From: Chara braunii
Taxonomy: Eukaryota > Plantae > Charophyceae
Length of the DNA stretch: 64,000 nucleotides
Reading direction: 5' to 3'
Assembly: GCA_003427395.1 (NCBI GenBank)
Contig: BFEA01000034.1
Location: 1,712,323-1,776,322, forward strand
Shown here piece by piece: positions 13,814 through 64,000 of this stretch (the stretch's first letter is position 1; every line of letters begins with the position of its first letter). The position numbers and the translations under genes are program-made. Under the pieces are notes generated by a model. It made no database searches and had not been told where the DNA came from. It saw only the letters and a program-made list of their open reading frames with translations.

Positions 13814-13866
13814 ACTTCCAATTTTTTTGTTCAAAGACATCTCATGTTTTTTTCTTGTAAGATATA

Positions 13867-13984
13867 TCAGCCTCCTGATGAGTAGGTGAAACTCCGACGA
13901 AATAGTGACCCCACTTTCGCCCCTACCCGTTTGTTGTTTTTTTCCCCCTCTCTGCCTCCAACCCAGGACAACTCTGTTTGACTC
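13867..13984 (+). ncRNA. 5'-truncated hammerhead ribozyme-bearing short repeat
   Basis: CCTC-CTGATGA-GTAGG-TGAAACT-CCGAC-GAAA. Lacks the GUC site and the 5' strand of stem I. Flanked by TA repeats. Confidence 0.7.
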
Positions 13985-14005
13985 TATATATATATATATA
14001 TATAT

Positions 14006-14155
14006 CGTCACAAATAGAACTGCCCGGTAAACCATAAGCAGAGAGAGAGAAGAGGACAACAAACGAGGGGCTGTGACAAACTGTTTCGNACAACAAACGA
14101 GGGGCTGTGACAAACTGTTTCGTCGGAGTTTCACCGACTCATCAGGAGGCTGAAC

Positions 14156-14157
<2 letters not shown>
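14006..14157 (-). ncRNA. 5'-truncated hammerhead ribozyme-bearing short repeat
   Basis: Reverse complement GGGTTCAGCCTC-CTGATGA-GTCGG-TGAAACT-CCGAC-GAAACAG. Starts ~2 nt after the cleavage site of the intact 62634 copy and lies between two (TA)n tracts. Confidence 0.78.
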
Positions 14158-14222
<65 letters not shown>

Positions 14223-42721: not shown

Positions 42722-45700
42722 AGAAGACTTAAGCCCGTGGAGTATTAACGATAACCTATAAGCACAAACCAAGCTAAACAAAAATACACAAGAACCAGAA
42801 AGGACTGTAAAATATCACCTATGGCTACTATCTACTATCTATGCCATCTTCTTATACCCACTGCAAGTGAGAGCATAGACATGTAGCGAACAAAAGCAGA
42901 CGAAAACCAAGGTGAAAAACCACCCCTAATACGGGGGAAAGTATAATCCCTCGGAGGATTCTAAGAGAAGAACACTGCGCTCCTATCCCAAACCAAGACC
43001 TTACTGCCTGTCTCCAGCGACCTGGCCTGTTTTCAAGCAACCGAGTGCAGCAGGTTGCAGAGGACCCTTCTTTTACTACTTCTGAAGCAGCCACGAACTG
43101 AATACCAGACGATTGTTTTCCACCCATGCAATTGATTTCCGCAGGACCCAAGTTTCCTCAAACCATCGAAGGTCCTGGGTTGAGGGATTACTGCCCACTT
43201 TCCTCCGCCAATCAGCCTGGATAGCATGTTTGAGATGGAGGGTAAAGGAAGATCGAATATGTTTGTTAGAGCACTCTTTGTTATCGAATACCCTCTCGTT
43301 GCGACTCTGCAAGATGACAAAGAAACTGGCTGCACGAATATTTTGGGCCACGTAGCCCCATCCTTTGGATTTTGAGAAACTTGAAGGAATGCCGCCCATC
43401 AAAGTCCACTCCTTAGTCCAAATGAAGGTTGTGTTGGAGATTCTGCACCAATGCTTGATCACCCAATTGGCAGGGCAATCCCACCAAAGATGAGTAAAAG
43501 ACTCGAAGGCTCATTCACATATAATACATTTCATATCAATTTTCATTCCTCTTTCTGCCATCCAAACTGCAGATGGAGTAAAAACAAGGGATACTAACCA
43601 TAACAGCGAGGCATGTCTTTGATTTGGGATCAGTTTAGATTGTTCCCAGCACGACGTAAGATCCTCATCAATATCTGCAGATTCGGTTAGCAGACAACAC
43701 GTGGATGCTTTAAGGGTTGATTAACTGTATATCCAATTTTAATCGTGTAGTCCACCAAGGTAGCATTTGAACCTCTGTTCCCCTTAGTGTTCCATTCCCA
43801 TTGAGCAGGATCAAGTTTCAATTGAGACACCGGATTGCCTTCCCCAAATAATTGACAGTTGAGTGAACCGTCTGAACGTGGTTCTTCAAGTACTCTAATC
43901 TGATGAAGCTCCGAACCTACCGGTGGTGCAGACGGTACGTCATCCTGCAACAGTAAGTCGGGGCCTACCACTGTCCATGATTGGAAATCCCGTTTGCCTT
44001 CATTGTTAATAGACATTAGCTTCCAAACTTGCTTATGGGGTGGTTGGGAAACTCCAAACCAAGTGTTGGGGGGATTTGTACCCTCTGCGGCCAAGATTGC
44101 CTTCCAATTATCAGGAATATCGTCAATAAGTGAGTCCCTTCGAACTTGAACCTCGATAAAGCGTGCTTGGCCTAGCGGTTCTCTCAGTTTCTCCACTGAG
44201 ATCCAGTTCCCCAAAATGGGGTCCCACATGTCCTTAATGCGCAGTATTCCCTTTTTGATCCATGAACGACCGAAACTGGTTGAAGAGGAGTCAGTTTTGA
44301 ACCAATCACCTGAGACATCCCATATTCTGGGATTCTCGAATAGTGGTTGGGAGAGCACCTCAGCTTTGGTCTCGGGTTCTACCCATACATCCGGACAAAG
44401 TTTCTTCCAGGCATGAACAATGGCCGACCAGAAAGGAGATTTAATGTGTCGGCATTGGAACGAGTACATGAATAAGCATGTCCAGACGTCTTCTGGTCGA
44501 CTTAGATTCCACTCTTGACTGAGGATGTGTTCAGCCAGGTAAACCCAGTGAGGGATAGGGAACATTAATGTCGCTTTCACTATCCACAGACAAAGCATTG
44601 CAGCAATTTGTATGAACGGATCTAGCATACCTAACCCACCCTCTTCACGTGGGAAGCATAACATCTCCCAGGCCACTTTAGGAATGAAGGAATCGTCATT
44701 ATTTGAAAAAGGTTTCCAAATAAATTGAGCAGCCCTACTTTTAATGAGGGCATAGGACAACTTACCTATGCCCCGCACTTTACCCACGTACCACAGGAGT
44801 GCGAACAGAGTACAGTTTACAACCATGGCTCTCCCGAGTAGAGACAAATGTGGTGCTTGGGCCCATGATGCTAATCGTTGGAAGATTCTCTGAGTCAATA
44901 AACTTTTCTGTGCATCTGAGCATTTACCTAGCGCTATTTAGACTCTGAGAAAACGTTCAGATTCTTCATCGCTGATCCTCTTCATGCCCTATTCCACACA
45001 GAGCGAATAGTCCTGGGGGAGGAAGTACGCAGATTTGTGTCAGTTTATTGCGGCTTCAGAGAGATTTGCATATTCATCCAGGCATAACTTGAGAGCAGCC
45101 AGTGACTCAGGTGAATTCTGAGATACCACGAATAAGTTATCTGCTAAGGCTTTTACCTTGAGGGGCGAAGGGCCCGCAGATAGTCCCCTGATTAGTGAAT
45201 GAGCTCGGATATTCTTGAGTAGTCCCTTCATTTGAATAGCAAAAAGTAAGGGAGCCAAAGGGCAGCCTTGACGCAATGATCTCGTCAAGGAGAATTCGCC
45301 CGAAAGTCTTTCATTTACCAACACAGCAGCGGTCGAGAGCGAATAGAGGGCAATTACCCAGCACTGAAAGTTCGAGCCGAAGCCCATATGATCCAACGTG
45401 GTCAAAACATATGACCAATTAACACAGTCATATGCTTTTTCCAAGTCAAGAAGGAAAACTGCAATGTCTAGATTCTCATTTTGTACTATCTCAAGGGTTT
45501 CGATGGCGGTTTCAACATTATCAAAGATTAATCTACCTTTGATGAAAGCTGCCTGATCCGAATGAACTATTTCAGGCATATAACAACCGAGCCTTCTAAC
45601 AAGTACTTTCGCTAGAATCTTGTATGAAACGTTCAAAACTGAAATAGGCCTCCAGTTACGGATCTGAGACTTCTCACCTTTCTTAAATAAAACCGAGATT

Positions 45701-47248
45701 ATACCTGTGCACATACTGGCTGATAATTTTCCTTCAGTCAAGACTTCATTATAGTTTTCCACTAGGTGAGTTCCCACAACATCCCAAATAGCTAGAAAAA
45801 GTTCGGTAGGCATGCCATCATCACCAGGAGATTTCCCGGCTGCCATTGAATTGAGGGCCGTAAGTGCTTCTTCTACCGTTATGGGGCGATCCAAATCAAA
45901 CTTGCCCGCAGGTGAAAGTCGGGCTTCAGTATTATCCCAGTGGGTGGTGGATTTGTGCAAATCAGACCGAATGAGTGTGTTCGGGTGACGAGAGGTCAAG
46001 ATATCTCTATAATATAGGGCAACATACTCACAAAGATCCTTGAGTTATTTCGCTATGGGGGCAACTTCATCAAAAGGATGTTTCAATTCCTTCATAGGAG
46101 TTGAGTATCCTTTCGGCAGTAATTTATGAAACGTATCTTTGGTCATTCGATCATTAACCACAATCCCCTTGACACGCAAGCGTTCCACCCAAATCTCTGA
46201 CTGTTTGATCTGGAGGTTGTCCCATTATGAGAGGAGATGCACTCTTTCCTTATTCCAAATATTTTTCGAGACAGGGTGCTCCAGCATTCTGGCCTCAGCG
46301 TAGACAATCTATTTCTGAATAGAAGCAGCTCGGTTATTCCTATCAAAAGTCATAATTCGGGAGATTAAGTTCAATAGATTGGAGAACATTGAAGAGTCAG
46401 CATCCCACCAAGTGGTCGTTGAGTCAAAGGACGGACGAGAAGTGGACCAGTCTAGCCAAAATTGTTTCATCCAGTTGACTAAATCTGGTTCGTTCAAGTT
46501 CTGTGTGTTGAACCTAAAGAGACCTCTTCCCCTTGTGATTTCAATTGTGTGCATCGTCAAGATAATGGGTTTGTGATCTGACATAGGGTGAGAGCTAATT
46601 TAAATCTTGTCTGTTAAGTCCCACATGTTAGAGGAGGTCAAGAAAAAATCCAAACGTCGAGCTGTAATTCCGGACGAATCTCTATAATGTGAGAACCACG
46701 TTGGGTCATCCATGTCCGGATGGGAAAGACGGAATGGATCAATTAGATCTGATTCCTCCATCAAGTTAGACAACTCGACTTTATCTTGCGAGCACCTTGC
46801 ACCAGGAAGGGCATCCAGGAAAAGGTTCTAGTCTCCTGCAAAAATTATCCTGTTGCCCTCTGGGATGAGTAATAATAATTCAGCGAAAAAAACAGCGCGT
46901 TGTTTGACGTCGGTGGGAGCATAAATACACACGAAAACCCAGTAGCACCCGTCTATATACAATTTGACCCAAGACCATCGACCCCAAAGATTGGAATAGA
47001 AATCAACAATTTCAGCTTTTATGGATCTATGGATAAGTATGGTTGTTCCTCCCTTTGAGCCAACTGCGGGAGACCATAATTGCGGGTCATCCCACCAATT
47101 ACCAAGCGTTGTTATTTTCTCTTCGTTTAACTTCGTTTCCTGGAGGAAAATAATTTGGATATTATTGTCGAAGATCCATGATTTGAGTCTGTCCTTTTTA
47201 AGCTTGCCTGTGGACTCGCCTAACCCTCTAACGTTCCACGATGCCAGT

Positions 47249-49408: not shown

Positions 49409-51180
49409 AGGAGGAGGGGGGTAATTCCAGCCACCAGATTTGAGAACGGGAGTTTAAGGCTCGAGGGCCCTTGTTGTTGTTGCGAAGAGAAGATGACACG
49501 ACTATGACTCAGCTATAGCGCAGAGTATAGATGGCGCATAAGCGACTTCTCATAAAACTCTTATGTAGGGGGTCGGACAGGCTGGACACTATGTTGTCGT
49601 CGTCTAACCCTACTGTGAGCGATAGTGTAAGGCGACTCCCTGACAAAGCAGTGTGAGCAAGACAACACAACCTACCATGGCGTCATCATGCTGGTGACGT
49701 CAACGGTCGTCGCAGACCTTCGTTGCCGAAGAGATAGCGCTTGGTCCGAAACGCAATAGTGCCGGCGGAAGCGCTCCGGTCGACCCCCCCCAGTTTCCAA
49801 ATGTCGCCAAACACGTTCCAACGACGGTGGGCCGTTTTTAATCGCCTCGCGGGTTTTCCAGCCGCCGTCCCGTGGGGTCCACCTCTAAATTTGGGACATG
49901 TTGAATCCATGTTCTAAATTTGGGACATGCTGAATCCATCTTCCGCTAGAACGTCGACAGGTGCACCTGCCATACAAAGGGTCTTGTGGCAGGGAATTGT
50001 CGTGGTTCCCTAAAAGAAAAAAAAGAGAATTGTCGTGGAGATTCGAGCCCAGGATCTGCTTATTCAATGGCTTCCATACACGTGCAACTGTCCATAGACA
50101 GATCGTCAGTTCAAATCCTGGCAACAAATATTAACTTATAGGGCCAGTTCCACGAAGAGGCGAGGTGGTGTATGTAGCCTCTGGAGTCGTGGGCGAGCCT
50201 TCTGGGTGGGCCACACCGGCGAACATCGGGAGCGTATGCGACCTCAATTGGCGTCACATTCATCGCTGCTAAGTCCCACCATTTGACCCAGTCGGTCTCT
50301 CAAAGACTTACTTGACCGACGTAACGCGTGTCGTGAATTGGTCGGTCGGTCGTCCACGCAGTCAACTCTCTGCATTGCAGAATGGCGGCAACGGCTGATC
50401 GATGTGGAAGCGGTCGTCAATCTGCGATCACCGACGGATCGGTGTGAGGCCTGCCCTGTCCAGATTTGTGTGATCAATAGAATCAGTAATCACTCATGGA
50501 ATTCATGGCGGGTTAGTTGGATTATGATCGATTCTTCGTATTGTGATTGAAGAGAGTTCTCGTAAAAGAATTGACGACAATAAAAGAATTGACGGCAAAG
50601 AAGACGATTATTCCGATGGTTGGCAGCCTCGTCGGCGGGAACGAACTAAGTCATCATAGCCATAATAATAAGGTTATCGTAGGCAGTCAAGTTTTCTATG
50701 AACTGATTGCCTGTAGTTTGTGCAAGGCAGATGCCGAAGGGAGAGGAATAATTCACCAATTCTTCCCCGTTCCCAGCTTCCCCGTCCTTGCTTTTCCTAT
50801 TTTTTGTGTTTTGTTCCGTTTGTTGTTCCTCATCTCCTACTGCTCCCGCTTCTTCTTCCTCCTCCCCCTCGCCCTCTTCCTCCTTCGGCATTCCTGGTCT
50901 TCCTTCTCCTCCTCCTCCTCCTGGTCTCCTTCTTCTTGTTCTACTTCATTGTATCTTTTCTACTCGATTTGGTTTCGTTTCTTCCTTGCCTCCTCCCTCT
51001 TCCCGGTGCCGATCGACTCGACTCCATTACAATCGATTAGAATCTGTGGCAAAATGAAAGCTAGAAGAGGCATTTTGTTGCTTGTCTTTCCGTCTCGACA
51101 TCGCTTCTACCGGTAGTCGGTTTCGTTGCGGACCTTCTCCTACGAACACATTTTGGCTCGACGGAAGCCAGCGTCGAACG

Positions 51181-51257
51181 CACGTGCACGACGTGCAAGT
51201 CGTGCGCGTGGGTTTTGGCCAATGGAAAACAAAGCGTCTGCGCGGGTTTTGGCCAAT
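51181..51257 (+). promoter_or_regulatory. Putative VPS8 promoter elements: G-box and duplicated GGGTTTTGGCCAAT (CCAAT boxes)
   Basis: CACGTG at 51181. The 14-mer repeats at 51210 and 51244, ~550 bp upstream of the ATG. Confidence 0.4.
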
Positions 51258-51278
51258 CACTCCAGTGAATGACATTCG

Positions 51279-51336
51279 ATGTCATAGTGAAGAGATTCAA
51301 CTAAGCGCGGGTAAACGGCGGGATTAACTATGACTC
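51279..51336 (+). rRNA. 58-bp fragment of 28S/25S rRNA (not a gene)
   Basis: ATGTCATAGTGAAGAGATTCAACTAAGCGCGGGTAAACGGCGGGATTAACTATGACTC matches the conserved eukaryotic LSU sequence, as I recall it, at 54/58 positions. Confidence 0.88.
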
Positions 51337-51502
51337 CCGATGCGAACAGAATTATTACTAATACAGAATAAATGAACTGATAGCAAACGATGACAATGGG
51401 CACGGATTTGGCTGGGCCAGTTGTTGGCCTCGTACCTTGACATTAGGTGGACCGTGCTACGCTACCCACCAATTCAAATCTGGTATGTTTTGTCTGGCCT
51501 TG

Positions 51503-51779: not shown

Positions 51780-54700
51780 ATGTCCAGTAACACGTCGTCG
51801 TCCATGATAGATGCTCTTCTTGGTGAGATAGAGGATGTGAGCAGCGACGACGACAGTGCCACGTGTCATCAAGGCGTTACGGTGGACGATTTGCTTGGAG
51901 ATGAGGACGAAGATGACGATGACGTTTCCCAAGCCGGGAAGGAGAAAGAGCAGCCAGGGGGGAGGAGGACGACATGGAGAGAGAAGGAAAGTATCGTTAC
52001 GTCTCAGACGGGTATTGTTCCCGCCTTCCGCAGCGTTGGGTCATCAACGGTGGAGGAGAGGCGGGCGCACCTTCTCGCCCGAGATGCGGCCACGGCGGCG
52101 TCTGCGCGAAGGACGGCGGCTTCTCCGCCGCCGCCGCCGTCAATGGGCACGACTTCGCTTTCCCCCTCCCCGTCCGGTTCGTCCTCTGGCGTCTCGAGGA
52201 GTGCAGAAGCTGCCGTGGAGACCACCAGTGCTGTAGTTGGCGGGCAAGACTCGGATGATCACGCGTGTCGGGTTCCCCTGGACGCAGGGCATGATGACGT
52301 GCCCACTACTGGCTTACGAGACCTACATCATTCTTCGTCGAATCTTCGCCAGGAGGGGGCACGTGATGGAGATGGAGTTCCAGCTTGGCCCCTATTGCCT
52401 GGCAAGGCACGTACTGCGTATAGTTCTGAAGGAGGAGGAGGAGGAGGAGGAGAGAAGGGAACGGCATCTGGCGTGTTCTTGTCTGCAGGTAGAGCTGAGG
52501 ACACGGGCAGATCACGAGATCAAGCCGAATCTGCATCGGTGCTGAGTGGCATGAGGAAAACCGGGTCGCTCATTGGCGAAAGTGACAACGGTGGGGAGGA
52601 TTTTGGGGTATGTTCAAAGGAGCAGGATGAGGAGGAGGGAGAGGAGGAGCGGGAGGAGGACGGGAGGAAGGGAGATGAAGGTTCCCTATTTAAGGGAAGC
52701 ACATCACGGAAGACCGGGCAAATTAGGAAAGCACCGGGAAGGGACAGGGAGGTGGGTGGCTCTATTGCGGCGAATGACGATGATGATGACGACAGCAGAA
52801 TCAAGAAGCACGACGATGTGCCGCTGTCAAGGGAAGAGAGTGGCTCAAGCGGGGGAATTCAGGCGGGGGGGGTTGGTGATGCTTCTCCAGGTCATGCAGT
52901 GTCCGTGGATGGAAGGGCAGGGGATTGGGAGAGGGAGGAGGTCGAAGTCGAGGGCTCGACGGGCGATCGAGAGATAATGGACAATGTCGAAGGACAAACG
53001 CCGAAGCCTTCTCCTGTTAGCACAGCGCTCCTTTCATCGATTGTGCCTCCTCCTCCTCCTCTTTTTCCTCTTTCTCCTTCTCCTCTTTCTCCTTCTCCTC
53101 TATCTCTTTCTCCTCCTCTTTCTCCTCCTCTTTCTCCTCCCCCGCTGTTATTAACAACAACGGCTAGGGTTGATGATGATTCGTCCACTTCGCGTGCGAT
53201 TTCCGTTGAGGTGGAACCTCCTCCGCGTCTCACCATCTCCATCGCGAACGGTTCAGGGCAGAGGGAAGTAGGAGGAAAGGTCAATGGTAATGGTAACAGC
53301 GGTGCGTACGCGGACCATACCGCGGGCGGAGACATTGACCGCAAGTCCATCCCCATCGTGAAGGAGGATGACGCGTCGGCAATTGACACGTGGCGGCGAT
53401 TGGGGGGACAGGTGGCGGCGGCATTTGATGGCGTGGATGTCGACCTGGCACCGCAACAGAGATTGCGACGGCTTCCCGGAAGCGCGGTCGCTGCCCTACT
53501 GGCGGTGGAAGCAAATGTTCAACGGACTCGGGAGAGTAGTCGGGTTCCTTCGCTGCAACTACAGCATTTCCGATCGCCTTCATCGTCGTCATCATCTTCT
53601 CCTTCTTCATCATCATCTTCTGCTTCTTCTGCTATCAGTTTGTCAACGTCTTTCATGCACAGAAGGAAGACGGCTGCGGAGTTCTCTAGTCCGAAGAGTT
53701 CACCTTCTCTGTACAGTTGCAGCCCGCTGGCGTTGGACGAGATAGTGGGAAGGGGAGGCGCACCCGGGGCATCGACCACGGATGCGGCTACAGCGGACAC
53801 GACGAGGATAGCGATCCCGGCAACTGGCAGCAGTAGTGCGGACGAAACGGCGGCGGAAGTTCTTCTTTCTAGACAGAAGCAGACGGGGGAGGAGACCACC
53901 GCCATCCTCTCTGGCTCGAGGGGAAAGGCAGGGCGTTTAGGTCTGTTGATTGTGAACTCTCGCGATGATGCCGACATGTCTGCGATCAGACAAGGGGAGC
54001 AAGAGGAAGTACGTCATGATTCCGCGATTGCAGCTCTACTCTCTTCACCTTCTCTCGCTGTTCCTGACTCCATGATCAGCTGCCCGGTCGGCACGTCATC
54101 TCTCTTGCCGCATGCCTTGCCATCTGTCCCTCGGATTTTCTCCTTAGGAAGCTGTTCCATTGAGGATACACCGCCACGTGTATCGTCGGGGTCGGGCGTT
54201 GGGATTTGGGACAGCCGTTGTGCAGCACAGGAGGAACGCGATGGCGGTGGGGGGAATCGCTGTCGTCCTCTGTTTCGTGAAGGCGGTCCCGTCCAAGCTA
54301 ACAACGTCGGGATCGGTATGCGGAGCTATGTCGATAACTCGTCGGCAGCGGCGATGGCGGTATCCTCCTCTTCTTCCATCATGGCGGTCGTGGTCGATCG
54401 CCACGTGGCTGATGGGGGCGAGTCGTTTAGGTTACGTGGGCGGGAGATTAGCAGCAGCGCCGCCAGTACCAGCTATGGACGAACGACCGGTGATTCCGGT
54501 CACGGTCGCACGTCCTCTGGGACCTTGTCGCTTTCGCAGCAAATCAGTCTCGCGTCTCTTGATCTCGACGCGTTCGAGATGGACATGCCAGAAATATATT
54601 GGGACAGCATCAGCGATGGCGGCGAAGATAGGAAATCGGAGATGCTCGCTCATGCCTCCGAAGTGGAGAACGACCAAGGCGATGACGATGATGAAGATGA

Positions 54701-57700
54701 TGATGCTGAAGATTATGATGATGGTGGTGATGATGATGGTGATGATGATGATGATGATGATGAGGACGAGGACGAGGGGATGGACAGTACGCAATCGTCG
54801 ATAGAAGAAGAAGGCTGCGGCGACGAACAGGAAGAAGCGGAGAGGTCGGCGGCGGCAGGTGGTGAAGATACGGGTGATTTGTCGTCGGGGGAAGAGGAGG
54901 GGTTGGACGCGCTAGATGCTGCGGAGGAGCAAGAGAGGAGGCAAGCGACATCGGGCGTGGACTTAGAGGAAGGGGCAGCCTCTGTTCCGATGAAACTTGA
55001 AGGTTTGAAGAAGAGTAAACCGGCCGTAGGGCTGCTGAAGGTGGACGCGCTCGGGCAGCTGTCTTCCGCTCTGGCCACCAGCCATTTGAGGAAGGATCAT
55101 GGCAATCCTCAGTGCATTGCGGTTCATTTGAGCTACGTGGCGGTCGGGATGTCCAAGGGCGGGATCCTGATGGCGCCCATCAAGTACAACTCGCAGCGGA
55201 GCGAGGACAAGACACGAGACAAGGCGCTGTTGCTTGCGGGTGGCGGGGGAGGAGGAGGGCCGGTGGTGTCGCTCGACTTCCACAGCTCCGGAGACCTGCT
55301 GCTCGCCGGCTATGCCAGCGGGACTATCATTCTGTGGGATGTGCTTCGTGCTACGCCTGCTAAGATCATCGTCGGGGAGCATTCTACGGCCGTTGTGAGG
55401 GTGGTTTTCGTCGGTCAGGACGCCGCCGCCGTCGGTGGTAGAAAGGCGTTGTCGGCTGATGCCAAAGGAGTGGTCTGCGTGCACACCTTCACGGTCGTTC
55501 CACTGGTTCGCAGGTACGCCGTCGGGACACAGCCGCTGCTGGATGGTGCACGGATGGGCCCCATCCTCTCGCTGTCCGCCGCGATGGCGATGGACGACGA
55601 TAACCTCCAGAGAGCGGCGGGGGCATCGTTATCGGCGGCGGACGCGGCAGGGACTGGGGGGACCGGGATCACGGGGGCGGCGGCGACCTCCTCGTCGAGC
55701 ATGGGACTGGGTGCCACGTCGCTCTTTCAGCAGTCGTTGGGGTTGGTCGCTAACGCGGCGGGAGTGGTCGCTGCGACGGCAGCAGAGGACATTAGCCGGC
55801 GGTTTCTGCATGATGTTGGCGGAGGAGGAGGGGGGGGAGGAGGAGGCGCAGCAGGAGGAGCAGCAGCAGCAGCAGGAGGGGCAGGAGGAGGTGGAGGAGG
55901 AGCTGGTCAGGAGTCCCTCGGATTGGTTGCGCTCGTCTCTCAGCAGCTCGCGTTGGTTGTTCGCATCGTCCCATCACTGGTGGTTCTCAAGAGCCTTCCT
56001 CGCCCCGAGGATATTCGTGACGGAGCGATGCCGTACACCGCGTGGAAGCGTACTCGCAAGTTCTCTTCTCCCGCTTATTCGCCGACCTTAACGACCACAG
56101 GCGGGACGCCGTTGTCTTCTTCGCAATCCTTCTTGCAAGGTGTTGGGGATGGCGCACACCAAAACGGAATTGCTGCGGGAGGAACGGGAGGAGGCGGAGG
56201 AGGTTGTGGCGGCAATGGATCGGTCTCTATGGTGGACGATGAACGAGTGCCGATGCTAGGGCTGGTGTGGGATCGTCACGTCATACTGGTGCAGGTCATT
56301 CGGTCGGAGTTGAAGGTCGTGTCTAGCTGGCAGGTTGACTGCGAGATGACGGGTATTGCGTGGATCGACGATGCGATTATTGCCACAACGGACGTGCGAC
56401 ACGTGCTGCGTCTGTATTCGATAGACGACGGAGCTGTAACGACGGAGCTCGAGAGAGTGCAATTGGGAGGAGTAGGTGATGGTCTCGTGTTCCACACCTA
56501 TCTGAGCACTTCTTTCGGAGTTCCGCTTAAGTCTTATCATAACTCGTTGGCCATTCGAGGAGCAGCTATCTGCGTTCTGAGCTTCTCGCAGCTGAAGCAG
56601 GTGCGTCTCCTGCCCTGGAAGGAGCGGATACGAGTCCTGCAGGATGCCGGGGATTGGATGGGAGCGTTCAAAATAGCGATGGACTTGTATGACGGCACGG
56701 CAAAGGGAGCAACAGGGCTTCCTAGGGACTTGTGGGCGGCCAGAGCAGCTATGATGCAGACTCTCGTTGCTCTTCTTGTCGCCTACATCGAAGAGGCGTT
56801 CGCCTACATAGTCATCGCTTCTGTCTCAGCCCCGACTGCTCCCGCCAATTCTGTTCCCGGCAGAACGTCGACGACGAGCGGTGCGACAATCGCGGCAGCA
56901 ATACCTGCTTCTTCTCCTGTGGACAAGGAGAGCGTGAAGATGGCGGGAGAGATGAGCGTCGCCAGAGGCACGACCAGCGAGGAAAGTGGTGCGGTGCTTG
57001 GAAATTGCGAGTCCGGAAGGGACAGCGGTGATGGGAGTAATCTTAGTAGTAGTAGTAGTAGTAATGGCGGAGAAAAGCCGGGAGGAGGGGAAGAAGAGGC
57101 GGCGCAGCTGGTCGTTGCGCAATATGCCGGTGTGGGTGGGGTTGCAGTTGAGTTCTGTGTGCACATCGGACGCACGGACGTTCTGTTCCAGCAGGTGTTC
57201 GGCAAGTTCGAGGCAGTTCACCAACGCGGGACTTTCTTGGAGCTGTTAGAGCCGTATATCCTGCGGGATATGCTTGGCGCGCTTCCACCAGAGATCATGC
57301 AGGCGTTGGTGGGTTGGTACGCGGCCAGAAGGCAGCTGGGGCGAGTTGAGCAATGCGTTCTTCATATGGATATCGGGTCATTGGACTTCAATCAAGTAGT
57401 GCGCATCTGCAGGGAGCACAGGCTATACAGCGCACTCATCTATGTTTTCACCAAGGGGCTGGACGATTTTGTCTCTCCATTGGGAGAGTTATTGTCGGTA
57501 GGGTTAGGAGAACGAGAAGGAGAAAGAGGAGGAGGAGGAGGAGAATCGACGACCTCGTCATTGCTACCGAGGCCTGACCACGACTCAGGGTACAAATTGT
57601 TGGTGTTTTTGAAATATTGTTTCTTGGGGCTACGTTTTCCGCCTGGGCACGGCAGTCTCTCGGCGAAAAGGTTGCCGTCCTTGAGAGAGGAGCTTGTCCG

Positions 57701-60700
57701 CTTCCTCATCGAGAAGAAGAATACAATCGAGGAGGAGGAGGAGAAGGAGGAGGAGGAGGAGGACCATGCCGCTCACGATGGCGGCGGAAATCGTGATTAT
57801 TTTGATGTCAAGAAATCGTATAACCGTGCGGCAGCCACTGCATATCCACGGTTGTCCTATCTGTTGGAGCTGGATGCGAAGGCGACTCTTCGGGTACTCT
57901 CCTTTGCGTTCCCTGAGGAAGGACCGCTAGGGGTAGGAAGTACGGGTTGGACATATGGAGGAGGAGGAGGAAAGGTAGGAGAGAGAGTAGAAGAGACGGT
58001 GAAGTCGTCGGATGAAGAGGAACGAAAAATAGAAGAGAAGCAGGGAGATGAAGTGGATGGGGGAAAGGCAAATGGTGAGGAAGATGGCCGCGTGCATCTT
58101 CTTCTCCAACAGTTGGTGAATGCGCTGCTGGAGGTTTGCGGTTTTCGTTCTTCTGATGAGTCGCGGTTGTCAAATGGTCTCGTCGTCGGCGTTTTAAATA
58201 TGGAGCAACAGCAGCAGAAGCAACAGGACGGAGGAGGAGGAGGAGCAAGAGGGGGAGGAAGAAGGCGCAACAGGAGCGAAGAAGATATGGAGAGTGGGGA
58301 AGTAGGCAGGGGAACGAAAATCCCGTTGTCTTGGGAGGAAGTCGGAAGAGTTTTGGAATTTGTGGCAAAATACATTGCCAGCAAACATGTTGAGGTGTCT
58401 GGGGACGTGATTCTTCGGATCGTGGAGCACCTGGCCTCCGGCAGCTCGAGGAGAAGAGCGAGGAGGGCTAGGAGGGAGGAGGAACTGATGCTTGCCGTCT
58501 TGCTCGCTGTGCCACCGACGATTATCAACGAGGACGAGGTGTTGCGTATTATTGACGAGAAGGGTGGGGGGTTCTGGCAGGTGGCGGCCTTGCTCCAGAC
58601 GCGAAGGGGCAACATGGCGGGAGCCTTTGAGAGTCACTTGAAGGACAAATCGAAGCCAGACAAGGTGTTCACTTTCGTGACCAGCATGCTTGACAGCGAA
58701 TCTGGCTTGTCAGCGGAGCAACGGTCACTTTTCATGGAGACGGTCCTCGGACATCTTCGAGAGTTATTGACGCTAGACGTCGAGGCGGCGCTAGAATGTG
58801 TGCTCGTGCATTTCGCAGGAAACGTTGAGCGCGTGATGAGGGAGCTGGACTGCGAGCCCAGGTTGCGGTTCCAATTGCTGAGAGGTATCCTGGGTGGTGC
58901 AGAGGCTCACTCTCGTTCTCCCAATTCGACGACGAACTCCGATTCCAGCTCCAATAATAAGGTCAGGTCTAAGAAGAGGAGTGGTGAGGAGCAACAGGCG
59001 CAGGCTCCTGCCTCACAACGTCCGCATAACCATAACTCTCGTTTGACGGAGCTTTTGAATCGGTCAAACTTGCAGGTCACGGATGCCATGGTCACCTCTT
59101 ACGTGGAATTGATGTGCCGGTTTGAGAAGACGGCCGTCTGTCCTTTCCTCGAAAGGAATGAGAACTACAAGCCTGAGGAGTGTCTTGCTCTTTGCCGCGA
59201 GTATGGGGTCACGGATGCCGCTGCCTTCCTTCTGGAACGGATGGGTGATGTCGGCGGTGCGCTTGACCTGATATTGGAGGTTGTGCAGAAGAGAATTCGT
59301 GCAATGGATCGTGCAGTTGCTCGGACGTTCGGAGAGCGAGGGAGAGAGGATGGAAAAGGAGGAAAGGAGACGAAAGAAGGTCAACGAAGTGGTAATGACC
59401 TCCAGATGAAAGGGGAAGAGGAGGAGGATAAGCAGCAGCAGCAGCAGGAGGAGAAGGAGAAGGATGTGATCGTTCTGGAGAAGCTGCCCCATGTGGTTGC
59501 TGTTAATGATGCAATGGCTATGGCTGTTTCACTCTGTCAAAAGAACAACCAACGCTTAAACGTGAGGGCATCCGAATCGCTTTGGTTTCGTCTGCTAAGC
59601 GCCTATGTGGAGCCCTTGCGGCAGCTCAAGGCCATCTCCTCTTCCTTCTCCTCCCCCTATTTAGGTTCTCTGGAAAGAGGGCGGAAAAGTCAGGCCATGA
59701 ATCTGAAGAACACGAACAAGGAGAAAAAGAAGAGGAAGAAGAAAGAGAAGCCACGTGAAGAAGATGGCCTTTTGCATGACCAGTTGCTTTCTCCTCTTTC
59801 GCTTATCTCTTGGATGAAGGGAGGCGGTGGGAAGGGGGATGATGTCCGCAGGGGGTCTCAGGGCAGCAAGTCGCAGGCCTCTTTGTCAAGAAAGTGGAAA
59901 TGCGCCAAGAATGCTGCCGCCACTGAGCAGATGAGGACGCTCTTGGTTGGGATGATGGGGAAAGTAATGTCGGGTATGGTCGGCTATGTTCCCCTTCCGG
60001 TTCTGCTTTCAAAGATTGTGAGTCAACATGGCAGTGATCAGTTCGGTGAGTTCAAGGCAACAATCCTGGGATTGCTGGGGACATATGGCTTTGAAAGGTC
60101 AATTTTGAAAACAGCCAAGAATCTGCAGGATGGAGATGCGTTTGCATCCATGCATGCTCTGAAGAGGGGAAGAACGCAAGCTCTTGGACCCAAGTCGCTA
60201 ACTTGCTGCGTGTGCAAACGGAACCTGCAACAGGAGGTAGCTGCGAGGCCTGTGCTTGTCAGAGCAGCTGGTGGGGAAGGAGGAAAGAACGGGTCTTCTT
60301 CTTCAGCAGCGTCATCTTCCTCCTCTTCTTTCGAGGGAGCTGGTCGAGGCGGAGTGAGCGGGCCAGTGCGTGGAATCCCTGTTGTGTGCAGCCCTGCCGA
60401 GAACCATTTCAGCACCTTCACCATCTTTGTCTGTGGGCACATTGCTCATGCAGTTTGCCTGGCTGGGCATGGTCAGCTTCCGGCTGAAGATACAGGAAGA
60501 GGAGGGCGGATAGCCATTGGTAAGGGCAGCTCGGAGCCTCCAGGAGGTGTTGCGAACGACTCCATCTGCCCCATTTGCCATCATGATAAGTTGACAGGAG
60601 GGAGCACTGACTCTTTGGCAGAGGGCTCTGTATGGGAATCTGCTTTCGTCAGCAAAGGTTGCAACTTTCCCGACGAGGGTGCCACGGCATCACAAGAGGT

Positions 60701-61466
60701 GGGAAGGGCAAGGAATGACCAAGGAGCTGCAAATGGGTCCACTGCAGCAAGTGGAAACCGAAGAGAAAGAGGTGCAAGAGGTGGCCAGTATGCCTTGCCA
60801 AACGAGGAGGTAATGAGGCGGCTGGATCTTGTCCGGAAAAGTGAGGCATACACTTTGCGGCGATCGCGTCTGTCGTTGTTGAATGATCTTGAAGAAGGAC
60901 TCGAGGCTTACGAGAAGGAGAAGTGGCAGGGCCTGAATCTTAGACCACCCGCTGTTGGCAGAAAGGATGGTGCAATGAGCAAAGAAAGAACACAGCTTAG
61001 ACAGGCGGCGATGGTAGCCAAAGCGAGGGCAACAGTGAGGACCACTTCATCAAGCTCAGCCTCGTCCGTCGTCTTCAGTGCAGGTGATGGGCTGTTACGT
61101 CAGTGGAAAGGCATTGCTGGTTCCAGTACCTCTTCAGCTTCCAAAAGCTTGCAACGTTCTCCTCCTCCTCCCAATCCTCAGCCTTTGGCATCGTCCTCAG
61201 GCACCAGTGTGAAACAGTCAGACGACAGTGCCTGGATAAGATCATCGGCTTCTCAGCCTTCGTCAATACTATCTGTGAAGAGCAGGGTAGCGAATGTGAG
61301 AGAAAATGATGATCCGAGCCCTGCAGAAAAGGGGAGTGAACGGAACTCCCCTCTGCGTTCCAGGTTCCTGTCTGCAGCAGAGTTCTTTGGAGATGCTCTC
61401 AGAAGTACTCCCTCCATTGAGGGTGCCAAAGCAGCGGCAAGGTCGCTGAAAGAAAGCATCTTTTAA
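51780..61466 (+). CDS. VPS8: Vacuolar protein sorting 8 homolog (CORVET subunit), 3228 aa, single ORF
   Basis: WD40 propeller (GDLLLAGYASGTIILWDV); LLPWKERIRVLQDAGDWMGA; Vps8 domain FLELLEPYILRDMLGALPPEIMQALV...LHMDIGSLDFNQVVRIC...GLDDFVSPL; CHCR repeat (YVELMCRFE...DAAAFLLERMGD); split C-terminal RING (CCVC...CGHIAHAVC...CPIC). Confidence 0.93.
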   Translation: MSSNTSSSMIDALLGEIEDVSSDDDSATCHQGVTVDDLLGDEDEDDDDVSQAGKEKEQPGGRRTTWREKESIVTSQTGIVPAFRSVGSSTVEERRAHLLARDAATAASARRTAASPPPPPSMGTTSLSPSPSGSSSGVSRSAEAAVETTSAVVGGQDSDDHACRVPLDAGHDDVPTTGLRDLHHSSSNLRQEGARDGDGVPAWPLLPGKARTAYSSEGGGGGGGEKGTASGVFLSAGRAEDTGRSRDQAESASVLSGMRKTGSLIGESDNGGEDFGVCSKEQDEEEGEEEREEDGRKGDEGSLFKGSTSRKTGQIRKAPGRDREVGGSIAANDDDDDDSRIKKHDDVPLSREESGSSGGIQAGGVGDASPGHAVSVDGRAGDWEREEVEVEGSTGDREIMDNVEGQTPKPSPVSTALLSSIVPPPPPLFPLSPSPLSPSPLSLSPPLSPPLSPPPLLLTTTARVDDDSSTSRAISVEVEPPPRLTISIANGSGQREVGGKVNGNGNSGAYADHTAGGDIDRKSIPIVKEDDASAIDTWRRLGGQVAAAFDGVDVDLAPQQRLRRLPGSAVAALLAVEANVQRTRESSRVPSLQLQHFRSPSSSSSSSPSSSSSSASSAISLSTSFMHRRKTAAEFSSPKSSPSLYSCSPLALDEIVGRGGAPGASTTDAATADTTRIAIPATGSSSADETAAEVLLSRQKQTGEETTAILSGSRGKAGRLGLLIVNSRDDADMSAIRQGEQEEVRHDSAIAALLSSPSLAVPDSMISCPVGTSSLLPHALPSVPRIFSLGSCSIEDTPPRVSSGSGVGIWDSRCAAQEERDGGGGNRCRPLFREGGPVQANNVGIGMRSYVDNSSAAAMAVSSSSSIMAVVVDRHVADGGESFRLRGREISSSAASTSYGRTTGDSGHGRTSSGTLSLSQQISLASLDLDAFEMDMPEIYWDSISDGGEDRKSEMLAHASEVENDQGDDDDEDDDAEDYDDGGDDDGDDDDDDDEDEDEGMDSTQSSIEEEGCGDEQEEAERSAAAGGEDTGDLSSGEEEGLDALDAAEEQERRQATSGVDLEEGAASVPMKLEGLKKSKPAVGLLKVDALGQLSSALATSHLRKDHGNPQCIAVHLSYVAVGMSKGGILMAPIKYNSQRSEDKTRDKALLLAGGGGGGGPVVSLDFHSSGDLLLAGYASGTIILWDVLRATPAKIIVGEHSTAVVRVVFVGQDAAAVGGRKALSADAKGVVCVHTFTVVPLVRRYAVGTQPLLDGARMGPILSLSAAMAMDDDNLQRAAGASLSAADAAGTGGTGITGAAATSSSSMGLGATSLFQQSLGLVANAAGVVAATAAEDISRRFLHDVGGGGGGGGGGAAGGAAAAAGGAGGGGGGAGQESLGLVALVSQQLALVVRIVPSLVVLKSLPRPEDIRDGAMPYTAWKRTRKFSSPAYSPTLTTTGGTPLSSSQSFLQGVGDGAHQNGIAAGGTGGGGGGCGGNGSVSMVDDERVPMLGLVWDRHVILVQVIRSELKVVSSWQVDCEMTGIAWIDDAIIATTDVRHVLRLYSIDDGAVTTELERVQLGGVGDGLVFHTYLSTSFGVPLKSYHNSLAIRGAAICVLSFSQLKQVRLLPWKERIRVLQDAGDWMGAFKIAMDLYDGTAKGATGLPRDLWAARAAMMQTLVALLVAYIEEAFAYIVIASVSAPTAPANSVPGRTSTTSGATIAAAIPASSPVDKESVKMAGEMSVARGTTSEESGAVLGNCESGRDSGDGSNLSSSSSSNGGEKPGGGEEEAAQLVVAQYAGVGGVAVEFCVHIGRTDVLFQQVFGKFEAVHQRGTFLELLEPYILRDMLGALPPEIMQALVGWYAARRQLGRVEQCVLHMDIGSLDFNQVVRICREHRLYSALIYVFTKGLDDFVSPLGELLSVGLGEREGERGGGGGESTTSSLLPRPDHDSGYKLLVFLKYCFLGLRFPPGHGSLSAKRLPSLREELVRFLIEKKNTIEEEEEKEEEEEDHAAHDGGGNRDYFDVKKSYNRAAATAYPRLSYLLELDAKATLRVLSFAFPEEGPLGVGSTGWTYGGGGGKVGERVEETVKSSDEEERKIEEKQGDEVDGGKANGEEDGRVHLLLQQLVNALLEVCGFRSSDESRLSNGLVVGVLNMEQQQQKQQDGGGGGARGGGRRRNRSEEDMESGEVGRGTKIPLSWEEVGRVLEFVAKYIASKHVEVSGDVILRIVEHLASGSSRRRARRARREEELMLAVLLAVPPTIINEDEVLRIIDEKGGGFWQVAALLQTRRGNMAGAFESHLKDKSKPDKVFTFVTSMLDSESGLSAEQRSLFMETVLGHLRELLTLDVEAALECVLVHFAGNVERVMRELDCEPRLRFQLLRGILGGAEAHSRSPNSTTNSDSSSNNKVRSKKRSGEEQQAQAPASQRPHNHNSRLTELLNRSNLQVTDAMVTSYVELMCRFEKTAVCPFLERNENYKPEECLALCREYGVTDAAAFLLERMGDVGGALDLILEVVQKRIRAMDRAVARTFGERGREDGKGGKETKEGQRSGNDLQMKGEEEEDKQQQQQEEKEKDVIVLEKLPHVVAVNDAMAMAVSLCQKNNQRLNVRASESLWFRLLSAYVEPLRQLKAISSSFSSPYLGSLERGRKSQAMNLKNTNKEKKKRKKKEKPREEDGLLHDQLLSPLSLISWMKGGGGKGDDVRRGSQGSKSQASLSRKWKCAKNAAATEQMRTLLVGMMGKVMSGMVGYVPLPVLLSKIVSQHGSDQFGEFKATILGLLGTYGFERSILKTAKNLQDGDAFASMHALKRGRTQALGPKSLTCCVCKRNLQQEVAARPVLVRAAGGEGGKNGSSSSAASSSSSSFEGAGRGGVSGPVRGIPVVCSPAENHFSTFTIFVCGHIAHAVCLAGHGQLPAEDTGRGGRIAIGKGSSEPPGGVANDSICPICHHDKLTGGSTDSLAEGSVWESAFVSKGCNFPDEGATASQEVGRARNDQGAANGSTAASGNRRERGARGGQYALPNEEVMRRLDLVRKSEAYTLRRSRLSLLNDLEEGLEAYEKEKWQGLNLRPPAVGRKDGAMSKERTQLRQAAMVAKARATVRTTSSSSASSVVFSAGDGLLRQWKGIAGSSTSSASKSLQRSPPPPNPQPLASSSGTSVKQSDDSAWIRSSASQPSSILSVKSRVANVRENDDPSPAEKGSERNSPLRSRFLSAAEFFGDALRSTPSIEGAKAAARSLKESIF

Positions 61467-61594
61467 TTAATCCCGAAGGTGCAGCAGTGGAAGAAACTGG
61501 TGCCTTGGTCCATGTGGTATGTTCTCTTAGTAGCTGCTCATGCCGTCCCATTTCATCTTGGCAACCATCTCTCTCTCTCTCTCATACACACACA

Positions 61595-61637
<43 letters not shown>

Positions 61638-61788
61638 ACACAAACACACACACACACACATATACACACATTGGTGGCCACACATTTTCTTTTTGGGAGG
61701 GGATGTATGTTTTGTGGGATGATTTGTAATGATTTGTGGGGGAAAGGAGAGAGAGAATTTGGGGTGCTTTAACAGCACGCACACACAG

Positions 61789-61820
<32 letters not shown>

Positions 61821-62633
61821 AGTTTTATGTCTGTTGGTCCTTTTCCTATTGTCTGTCTCCCCTCTGATTTTTTCTAAGTATTTTTGTGTGGGCCCAACTG
61901 AGCACCCTTAGGTAGTGCCAAACAGTCAGTGGTTCCTCGTTTGGAGTGCCAACTGCACTCTTAGGGGGGCCGCTCGGTTCGGGTTATCTGTGTTGCCTGT
62001 AGGTGATGACGGATGCTCGTCGGAGTGTCTCCCTGGCTCAGTGGGTGGTGGGAACCAACAGTCGTGGGGTTCACCCGTGATGTGAGTAGGTGATGTGCTG
62101 CTTTGCTCCGTGTTGGATGTGTGGACGACTCCGTCTGTGCTCCACCACTGCCTTGCTGCCCGTTTGGCTTGCCTCGCAGGTCGTTCTTGGCATGCTGCTG
62201 TCTTCACTGTGTGGTGTGGCCGGGTTGTGGTGTTGCCTTGCGCTTCGCTGCTTCGCTGCCTTGCAACCTGTCCGCTGGTCGTGCCTTCCGGGTCTTTTGC
62301 TTGCGCGCCCTGTAGTTTGGTTGCCGTGTTGCGGTTGCCTTGTGCTCCTCAGCATGGTCGCTCTGCTGCTTGTCCGCTTGCCCTCTCGTCCCTTGCAGTG
62401 TGGTTGTCTTGGTCGTGTTGCCTGGTGCTTCACTGCTTGGGTGCCATGATGCGAGTTCGGCGTGCCGTGTCGTTCCTTGCAGTCGTTTTGCCGTTGTGCA
62501 GCCGTGTTGCCTCTACTGCGCTGCCTGGTGCTCCGCAGGGTTGCTGCCCGCTGCTATGTTCTGCTTGGGGACAGTCTGCCTTCAACAAGGGTCAAAGGGT
62601 TCATGACCCAAACCATCAATACGGGCACTCCGC

Positions 62634-62689
62634 AGATTGTCGAGGGTTTAGCCTCCTGATGAGTCGGTGCAACTCCGACGAAACAATCT
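62634..62689 (+). ncRNA. Type III hammerhead ribozyme, intact
   Basis: Stem III AGATTGT/ACAATCT; GUC cleavage after 62641; stem I GAGG/CCTC (loop GTTTAG); CTGATGA; stem II GTCGG/CCGAC (loop TGCAACT); GAAA. Confidence 0.93.
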
Positions 62690-63501
62690 ATCATCAGTGT
62701 TATTTTTTTCGGTTTTGCATGTTTTGATACTTCATTTTTTTTTGGGATGTTTCTTTGGCATGTTTTTTTTGGACACACACACACACACGCACACACTCTT
62801 CGTTGGTTCTCTATTTTCCTCTGTTTGTTATGTCTTTCTCACTGTGTTTGCTGCATTTCCTTTTCTTTTCTGTTTCTTTTCAATGTGTCCAGCGACCCTC
62901 CTCAGTATGTGTTTTGCAGTATTTTTGGGCTGGGGGTCGGGAGGGCTTGTGTGTCTGGTGTCCTCAGTGGTGAGAGATGTTCGTTCCTCCTGTAACTTCA
63001 TGGTCATTGACAGTGGCGTGAACCCATCGGCTGCAGAATTGCACGATTTTTGTGATGTGATTGTCCACCTCGATCTGTGATATAGGAGTGGGCTGCTGAT
63101 CTGCTTGTCTTGCTACTTATCCCTCTGCCTTGTTGCCTTGTTGCCTTGCTGCGCCTTGCCACTTGCCTGGCCTTTTCCCTGGCCAGCTCGCTGCTTGCCT
63201 TCCTGTCTCCCTGCCTGCCTGCCTGCCTGCCTTGTTGACTTGCTGCTTACCTTGCTTCCTACTTGTCTGCCTGCTTGGCTCATGCCTTGCCGCTTGTCCT
63301 GCCATTTGCATGCCTTGTAGCCTTGCGGCCCTGTTTGCACCCGATTTGTTGTTTTCTTTGTTGTTTGCATGCTGCTTACCTTGCCATGCTTGCTGCCTTG
63401 GTGCCTGCTTGTCGGCCTGTGTTGTGGCCTCTCTGTATTTCCATTTTTCAGCTGGAGTCGAGACAGATTATGACTTGAAGCACCATAAGGAGATTCTGCT
63501 G

Positions 63502-63553
63502 ACTGTCGAGCGCTCAAGCTGCTGATGAGTCGGTGAGAGTCTGATGAAATAGT
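63502..63553 (+). ncRNA. Type III hammerhead ribozyme, degenerate second copy
   Basis: ACTGT-C-GAGC-GCTCAA-GCTG-CTGATGA-GTCGG-TGAGAGT-CTGAT-GAA-ATAGT. Core intact, with G-U wobbles and one stem I mismatch. Confidence 0.78.
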
Positions 63554-64000
63554 GTGTCATTATGGCGTTTTTAATGCTCTTTTTTTCCTTTTTGTATGTT
63601 TTCCCTCACTTTATGATATTTCTTGCTCGTTCATTCTTGCAGTATGATGAGGTTGGTTAGTCTGATGCTGGAAATCTGATGTATCTTTTGAATCCTTTAT
63701 GTCAACACTCTTTACCTTGCACATGAGACTATGCCTTGGTGCCAAGCTGTATGGCTGAAGGTTTTTATCATACACAGCTAAAAGGGCCTTTACCCGATAT
63801 AGGCCTCAGGCCTTGTAAAAATAAAGCAGCACGGGCCTTGAAAAAGTAAAGCATTGTGAAAAGGTATCTCGTCAGAGCTCAGAAACGTGAAAGCAGGTCA
63901 AAGGGCAAGTTCTCTATCAACAGGCATATTTAAAACTAAGGCAAAGGGCATTGTCAAAAGACTTACCTGTTCACCAGGAGATGTGTATGTCATGTCTGTT

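Follow-up and report, generated by a model that had tools for sequence, protein, structure and literature searches.

High-copy Chlamys Penelope-like elements have been described in the alga Chara braunii, one type of which carries a canonical 3′ hammerhead (Craig et al. 2021, PMC8557442). Insertions of Chlamys elements are biased towards (CA)n, and 5′ truncation as well as tandem or inverted neighbours are typical of Penelope-like elements (Craig et al. 2021, PMC8557442); the hammerhead type of the C. braunii elements is not stated in that paper (PMC8557442). The retrozymes of plants are built from two ~350 bp long terminal repeats (LTRs), each with a hammerhead, and are further marked by a primer site for tRNA-Met, a polypurine tract, target duplications of 4 bp and a distance of 600-1000 nt from one cut site to the other (Cervera, Urbina and de la Pena 2016, PMC4918200). 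Non-LTR retrozymes, for which an origin from Penelope-like elements was proposed, have been reported from metazoans (Cervera and de la Pena 2020, PMC7229834; Li, Clavereau and Pollet 2026, bioRxiv 10.64898/2026.07.22.740005).

The window, that is, the whole stretch of DNA that was analysed, covers 64 kb of C. braunii BFEA01000034.1 (assembly GCA_003427395.1). Two hammerhead motifs, HHR1 and HHR2, lie on the same strand (+) 3′ of a VPS8-like gene, and their cut positions are 866 nt apart. An earlier note on this DNA had proposed that the pair makes up a single retrozyme from which a monomer or circle of 866 nt is released. In the reading preferred here (probability roughly 0.7), HHR1 and HHR2 are two separate old copies of an abundant, short and non-coding retroelement family, and not the two ends of one retrozyme. 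The observation from which the note started holds for HHR1 and partly for HHR2. The coordinates of all features are collected in Table 1.

Table 1 Features of the 64-kb C. braunii window
Feature	Position	Strand	Evidence and remarks
LINE with endonuclease, RT and zf-RVT ORFs	1114-5227	+	Not Penelope-like
5′-truncated family copy	13859-13912	+	R1 49.7 bits; begins 9 nt downstream of the cut site, behind a short (TA) run; its tail stops at (TA)n 13988-14007
Family copy beginning 2-3 nt downstream of the cut site, right after a long (TA)n	14108-14162	−	Rfam 25.5 bits; R1 66.1 bits
Second LINE-like RT, stop-interrupted	43690-46200	−	Not Penelope-like
VPS8-like ORF, 3,228 aa, uninterrupted	51780-61466	+	Pfam TPR_Vps8 1e-50; Vps8 beta-propeller 6e-22
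GT..AG intron downstream of the VPS8 stop, holding HHR1, 1,935 nt	61517-63451	+	RNA contig and one raw read
A-poor (5% A), CTG-rich low-complexity block	62058-62587	+	Ends 47 nt before HHR1
Unit A homologous block (~45 nt, HHR, ~36 nt)	62590-62725	+	Base-level match to 63456-63602
HHR1, intact type III hammerhead	62634-62689	+	Predicted cut after C62641; Rfam RF00008, descriptor scan, MFE fold
Unit A T-rich 3′ tail	62690-62772	+	Holds UCAUCAG, 62691-62697
(CA)12 microsatellite directly after unit A	62773-62797	neutral	Microsatellite scan
Second A-poor, CTG-rich block	63044-63464	+	Ends 36 nt before HHR2
Element-derived exon, 81 nt, 5′ half of HHR2	63452-63532	+	Contig match; ends G|GUGAGA in helix II / loop 2
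Unit B homologous block	63456-63602	+	Base-level match to 62590-62725
HHR2, decayed homologue with intact core and weakened helices	63500-63555	+	Cut-site equivalent C63507; Rfam, family model R1, folding

Results

An intact hammerhead and a decayed homologue

HHR1 consists of an open helix III of 7 bp, a GUC triplet, a helix I of 4 bp with a 6-nt loop, the CUGAUGA core, a helix II of 5 bp with a 7-nt loop, and GAAA. It was the sole fully paired hammerhead found in the 64 kb by a strict descriptor scan of both strands. Against Rfam RF00008 (Hammerhead_3), HHR1 scored 46.1 bits (E value=2e-8 in 2 kb and 6.3e-7 in the whole window), and as this is 2.4 bits below the gathering threshold of 48.5 bits, it is missing from a scan at that threshold. 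The minimum free energy (MFE) structure of HHR1 folded alone is the canonical hammerhead fold (−16.9 kcal/mol), with a probability of 0.32 for all three helices together. The perfectly paired type III hammerhead of the earlier note was thus borne out, and cleavage of intronic RNA by HHR1 after C62641 is predicted to be possible.

Just 2 nt behind helix III of HHR1, the heptamer UCAUCAG forms an exact 7-nt complement of the CUGAUGA core. In longer sequence contexts the core pairs with this heptamer, and the thermodynamically predicted probability of the hammerhead drops from 0.32 to between 0.17 and 0.0005, so that cutting by HHR1 would be confined to a brief co-transcriptional window. In such a model, the anti-core heptamer may serve as an attenuator of self-cleavage. 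Weaker anti-core versions are also present behind HHR2 and behind the family copy at 14108-14162.

All core positions and the GUC cleavage triplet of RF00008 are kept in both motifs, yet the three helices of a type III hammerhead, present in HHR1 with 4, 5 and 7 bp, are not convincingly formed in HHR2. The score of HHR2 against RF00008 was 17.8 bits (E value=2.1), also short of the gathering score, while that against the family model R1, which was built from the window's own copies, was 77.8 bits. When HHR2 and ~45 nt of its tail were aligned to HHR1, the score was 46, compared with 20±3 for shuffled sequences (z ~9); by this alignment HHR2 is a true homologue of HHR1 and not a chance match. 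Half of the 16 pairs of HHR1 are unchanged in HHR2, two are changed on both sides, three have become G.U and three are broken, namely the first helix I pair, which adjoins the core and is now G.G, and the two outer helix III pairs. The two both-sided changes are not significant given so few sequences (as many were found in 83 of 500 shuffles). For HHR2, the hammerhead fold is at −7.0 kcal/mol versus −13.2 kcal/mol for the MFE structure, which corresponds to a probability of 1.4e-5, and on these folding models HHR2 is probably inactive. Therefore, the description of HHR2 as a diverged second copy in direct orientation with its pairing partly preserved stands as to homology, strand and distance (866 nt) and as to the two pairs changed on both sides, but the motif is decayed, with a probability of folding of only ~1e-5, and the helix I that had been put forward for it (GAGC/GCTG) includes a mismatch.

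Family copies next to microsatellites and their transcription

Exactly four family copies were found in the window with R1: HHR1, HHR2 and the two copies at 13859-13912 and 14108-14162. The latter two are placed tail-to-tail around a (TA)10 and are both without the 5′ strand of helix III, and the copies are accordingly arranged as one inverted pair and one direct pair. All four adjoin (CA)n or (TA)n, and two of the four are truncated close to the cleavage site. The insertion pattern of Penelope-like elements, which comprises microsatellites, 5′ truncation and tandem or inverted neighbours, was therefore found here in each of its parts. Many copies of the family begin right at the cut site or immediately past it, which is the footprint expected if the RNA cuts itself before being copied into DNA from its 3′ end. 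In the same region (13859-14222), a single N at 14089 lies between duplicated stretches of ~34 nt and looks like an assembly join. At the border of helix II and loop 2, all family copies carry G|GUGNA, which resembles a 5′ splice site (62664-62672, 63530-63538 and the equivalents at 13.9-14.2 kb).

The RNA depth over the HHR1 core was 130-260, and nearly all of the reads show the bases of other copies (62649 C and 62670 A); for example, C was replaced by A at 62670 in 518 of 519 reads. In many reads, (TA)n or varied sequence immediately precedes 62646-62650, the loose read ends beyond 62685 agree with the tail of the 14108-14162 copy, and in RNA contigs of other copies 62536-62619 is joined to a hammerhead continuation. 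Sense reads of the family were in 4-5 fold excess over antisense reads. As the reads at the HHR1 core stem mostly from other copies, the family is abundant and transcribed, mainly in the sense of the ribozyme. With four copies in the window, their microsatellite flanks and the abundant transcription of other copies, the suggestion of a dispersed, non-coding and ribozyme-bearing retroelement family has held up.

An association with Penelope RT or GIY-YIG ORFs had also been proposed as a check. No ORF for a Penelope-like RT, with its GIY-YIG endonuclease and CxC motif, was detected in the window, whether close to the copies or further away, and the two RTs that are present look LINE-like (Table 1). 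Since the window has no Penelope-like ORF, the mobilising enzyme proposed below is drawn from the literature; and since the element itself has no RT or GIY-YIG ORF, the only Penelope-related label that could apply to it is that of a putative ‘non-autonomous derivative'. Microsatellite-targeting LINEs are an alternative mobiliser.

In metagenome contigs, no match to the exact family core was found. A looser pattern retrieved 23 metagenome contigs (L002-L024; for example, L016:8186-8246, L008:1669-2182 and L002:600-1553) whose type III hammerheads share helix II (GUCGG/CCGAC) with the family; despite this common helix, they were rejected as members of the Chara family. The loop 2 of L016 and L023 is identical to that of the abundant Chara variant. 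Several of the contigs harbour two to three same-strand hammerheads 350-700 nt apart, and in L008 an ORF of 2,977 aa lies beside the hammerheads.

Extent of the homology between units A and B

The homology between unit A (around HHR1) and unit B (around HHR2) spans only ~135 nt around each motif, with 55-80% identity in 20-nt steps. Upstream of the homologous blocks, a stricter alignment was at chance level (z 1.3). Thus, the ‘similar flanks' of the earlier note are similar for ~45 nt on either side of the motif, but not beyond. The ORFs between the motifs are of low complexity and without a Pfam match, in line with the previous statement that no credible ORF lies there.

Ahead of unit A, (CA)n runs longer than the one that follows it are present at 61586-61670 and 61776-61817. 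Each motif is preceded by an A-poor, CTG-rich block (Table 1). Merely three A-poor blocks exist in the 64 kb, and the third (50738-51040) is of a different kind, being the CT-rich promoter tract before VPS8. In unit A, the A-poor block contains an internal tandem duplication of ~83 nt (71% identity; 62308-62483). When 61823-62579 was aligned collinearly with 62815-63499 under lenient scoring, the score was 294, versus 217±15 for shuffles that keep the local composition (z 5.1), while the word matches between the two units show no sharp diagonal and are scattered as expected from shared low complexity. The likeness of the A-poor blocks and the lenient alignment are explained by shared low complexity, or by two copies of a longer variant of the element, no less well than by an ancient tandem duplication.

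No tandem repeat unit was found at the locus by TRF, and the spacer is not a repeated unit. A third, degenerate ribozyme junction near 63643, which would have implied tandem units of ~135 nt, was considered and rejected, with z values of 0.8 and 2.7 and no match to R1 with filters off.

Retrozyme signals and circular RNA

Direct LTRs of ~300-400 bp, each holding a hammerhead, are absent from the locus, as the homology extends over ~135 nt only. For the tRNA-Met primer-site 12-mer there was no match within two mismatches in 61-64 kb, and no purine run of at least 8 nt, as a polypurine tract would require, exists in 62690-63499; hence neither of the two signals that had been suggested for inspection was found. 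The flanks are (CA)n microsatellites, and no LTR ends can be defined at which to look for a 4-bp target-site duplication. Among the defining features of plant LTR retrozymes, the one found at this locus is the spacing of 600-1000 nt between cut sites (866 nt). For an array of the metazoan type (head-to-tail units of 170-400 nt with type I motifs), there is neither a tandem unit nor a third copy, and the motif is of type III. The copies at 13.9-14.2 kb were also considered as circularly permuted monomers, whose 3′ ends would equal the sequence upstream of the cut site, and were rejected as such (z ~0).

In three oligo-dT runs and one contig set, libraries of a kind that misses circles, the spacer at 62815-63216 had an RNA depth of 0 and no back-joint. 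Nor did read ends pile up at 62641/62642 or 63507/63508, the cleavage sites predicted previously, in these libraries, where the locus-specific depth is near nil and where oligo-dT selection leads to blindness to circles and most cleaved fragments. With no LTRs, primer site or polypurine tract, a spacer that is unrepeated and free of RNA, and an HHR2 that is unlikely to fold, the proposal of a single retrozyme releasing an 866-nt monomer or circle is not upheld.

The VPS8 transcript, its intron and a small exon

The ORF with the Vps8 domains stops 1,168 nt before HHR1, in agreement with the distance of ~1.2 kb given before. A 2,927-nt RNA contig runs collinearly with the genome from 60061 to 61515 (the 3′ end of VPS8) and then continues with 63451-63532 without a mismatch; the splice joint (61515/6 to 63451/2) was seen in this contig and in one raw read. 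The intron donor is GTATGT and the acceptor is located behind a pyrimidine run. As the skipped 1,935 nt have GT..AG ends, HHR1 is intronic and spliced out. The RNA depth is ~0 over 61609-61876 and 62815-63216, and the skipped stretch is otherwise covered by repeat reads only. In all reads from the VPS8 exon the first mate is on the − strand, thus the library is stranded and the transcript is in + sense.

The small exon begins where the homology to unit A begins, and hence is derived from the element. The contig match stops at 63532, and the further 1,390 nt of the contig were found nowhere in 60001-64000. From this end of the match and the genomic G|GUGAGA at that point, we infer that a 5′ splice site lies inside helix II / loop 2 of HHR2, with its partner acceptor outside the window. 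A mis-join of the contig via the repeat is unlikely, because the stretch in common with another copy reaches 63553 and not 63532. If the donor at 63532 is used, the mature RNA would keep just the 5′ half of HHR2. The exon at 63452-63532 and the VPS8 coding exon are covered to a similar depth, so the transcript is not destroyed wholesale by either motif. The suggested encounter of the motifs with VPS8 transcripts was correct in that a transcript crosses the region, but HHR1 is spliced out of it and HHR2 straddles an exon-intron border. Past the end of the window, the VPS8 transcript may run on into an adjacent gene.

Several further observations concern the surroundings of the transcript. The VPS8 stop is ~50 nt before the exon junction (61464-61517) and seems to be followed by at least two introns, with the 9.7-kb coding region being uninterrupted. 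At 61877-62144 and 63779-64000, many variant-bearing RNA reads and contigs represent copies of other expressed repeats. Reads of the former stretch come mostly from the opposite strand, and words like the A-box and B-box of tRNA genes occur in it near 62035 and 62069; no tRNA was found by ARAGORN at 61877-62144. A weak match to eukaryotic LSU rRNA (25.7 bits; E value=0.04) is located at 51257-51375, just upstream of the VPS8 start.

Discussion

Under the best explanation, the pair of HHR1 and HHR2 is not a functional two-ribozyme unit. The family is one of non-coding retroelements with a type III hammerhead near the 3′ end that adjoin (CA)n or (TA)n, and its most likely life cycle can be put together from the features above and the published biology of Penelope-like elements. 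The element would be transcribed, the hammerhead would cut the RNA, and the 3′ fragment, or sometimes a longer uncut RNA, would be reverse-transcribed at a microsatellite nick by an RT supplied in trans by a Penelope-like (Chlamys) element. The presumed outcome is many copies that start at the cut site and a few, such as HHR1, with a complete ribozyme. At this locus, two copies lie in the same orientation in the part of the transcript that follows the VPS8 stop. Unit A is removed with an intron, and unit B has decayed and provides its first 81 nt as a small exon, with helix II / loop 2 of the ribozyme apparently acting as the 5′ splice site.

Of the other readings, a rather unlikely one takes the locus as the relic of a tandem, dimeric non-LTR retrozyme or of a partial tandem in the style of Penelope elements, in which a unit of ~0.87-0.95 kb was inserted or duplicated head-to-tail, once cleaved twice to yield unit-length RNA and has decayed since. 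This would account for the common orientation, for a spacing (866 nt) within the 600-1000 nt of plant retrozymes and for the parallel order of (CA)n, ~240 nt, the A-poor CTG-rich block, ~40 nt, hammerhead and T-rich tail in both units, and would agree with the lenient alignment (294 versus 217±15) and the two compensatory pair changes between the copies. However, a dimer is at odds with word matches that lack a sharp diagonal, with a stricter upstream alignment at chance (z 1.3), with ~30% divergence beside a perfectly kept HHR1 and with a (CA)12 run between the units; moreover, HHR2 is not expected to fold, the spacer is without RNA cover, and the 3′ ends of the monomer-like copies are unlike the sequence upstream of the cut site, which leaves circular permutation unsupported. 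A broader and quite unlikely proposal is that the family includes type III non-LTR retrozymes of ~0.9 kb, of which this locus would be a decayed dimer, that tandem units would release and circularise an RNA of ~866 nt, and that helix II / loop 2 (GUCG|GUGARA) would be a portable 5′ splice site that seeds host exons.

It is very unlikely that HHR1 has been kept as a cis-regulator, with co-transcriptional self-cleavage in the intron competing with splicing and thereby tuning either the 3′ end of the VPS8 mRNA or its level. The ribozyme is indeed intact, in sense orientation and inside a confirmed intron of the VPS8 transcript, the 7-nt anti-core segment directly behind it could gate its folding, and hammerheads reportedly occur in introns and 3′-untranslated regions of amniotes and rodents; yet the depth of the downstream exon in spliced transcripts is similar to that of the VPS8 coding exon, and intactness is equally explained by a subfamily that is still active, given that another expressed copy has the same helix III strand (loose end 62619). 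As for a classical LTR retrozyme of plants mobilised by Ty3-gypsy elements, the two direct type III hammerheads with cut sites 866 nt apart and a non-coding interior are what it would predict, but the direct repeats of 300-400 bp, a nearby tRNA-Met primer-site match within two mismatches and a purine run of at least 8 nt between the motifs are all missing, and microsatellite flanks are found rather than 4-bp duplications, which renders it extremely improbable.

The hammerhead-bearing Penelope-like elements of C. braunii are already in print, and the locus reveals no new system. What is new is the intron downstream of the VPS8 stop by which HHR1 is removed, and the element-derived exon of 81 nt, whose donor appears to lie inside HHR2. 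The locus is a clean, RNA-supported example of hammerhead retroelement copies that landed inside a host transcription unit, where an intact ribozyme is tolerated in an intron and a decayed one was made into an exon, apparently via the donor in its own helix II / loop 2. Type III hammerheads in an LTR-less, microsatellite-seeking element of a streptophyte alga also bear on the origin of plant retrozymes. Should the locus be a decayed dimer after all, a streptophyte alga would be a missing link between the LTR retrozymes of angiosperms (type III) and the Penelope-derived non-LTR retrozymes of animals (type I).

Vertebrate HH9 and HH10 and the discontinuous hammerhead of rodent Clec2 are conserved single-copy motifs. 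The vertebrate hammerheads of introns and 3′-untranslated regions are comparable to the present ones in that a sense hammerhead is part of a host transcript, whereas the motifs here are copies of a dispersed repeat, one of which has decayed. With the non-LTR retrozymes of metazoans, the family has in common that it is short, non-autonomous, hammerhead-bearing, LTR-less and probably mobilised by Penelope-like elements; those, however, form head-to-tail arrays of 170-400-nt units with type I hammerheads, while here the hammerhead is of type III, no array was found and the spacer is unrepeated. Similarly, the LTR retrozymes of plants (PMC4918200) are non-coding and exhibit two same-strand type III hammerheads 600-1000 nt apart, but their ~350 bp LTRs, primer site and polypurine tract have no counterpart at this locus, which instead has microsatellite flanks and one decayed motif, and from which no unit-length RNA was seen in the oligo-dT libraries. 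Compared with the Chlamys elements, the copies here are without an ORF and the window is without a Penelope-like RT, and the likeness is drawn from their published description. Nevertheless, Chlamys-2_cBra and the EN-less ‘PLE-X' (PMC8557442) agree with the family in species, in a hammerhead near the 3′ end, in high copy number, in (CA)n bias, in 5′ truncation and in tandem as well as inverted neighbours, and the Chlamys elements of C. braunii are its closest published match.
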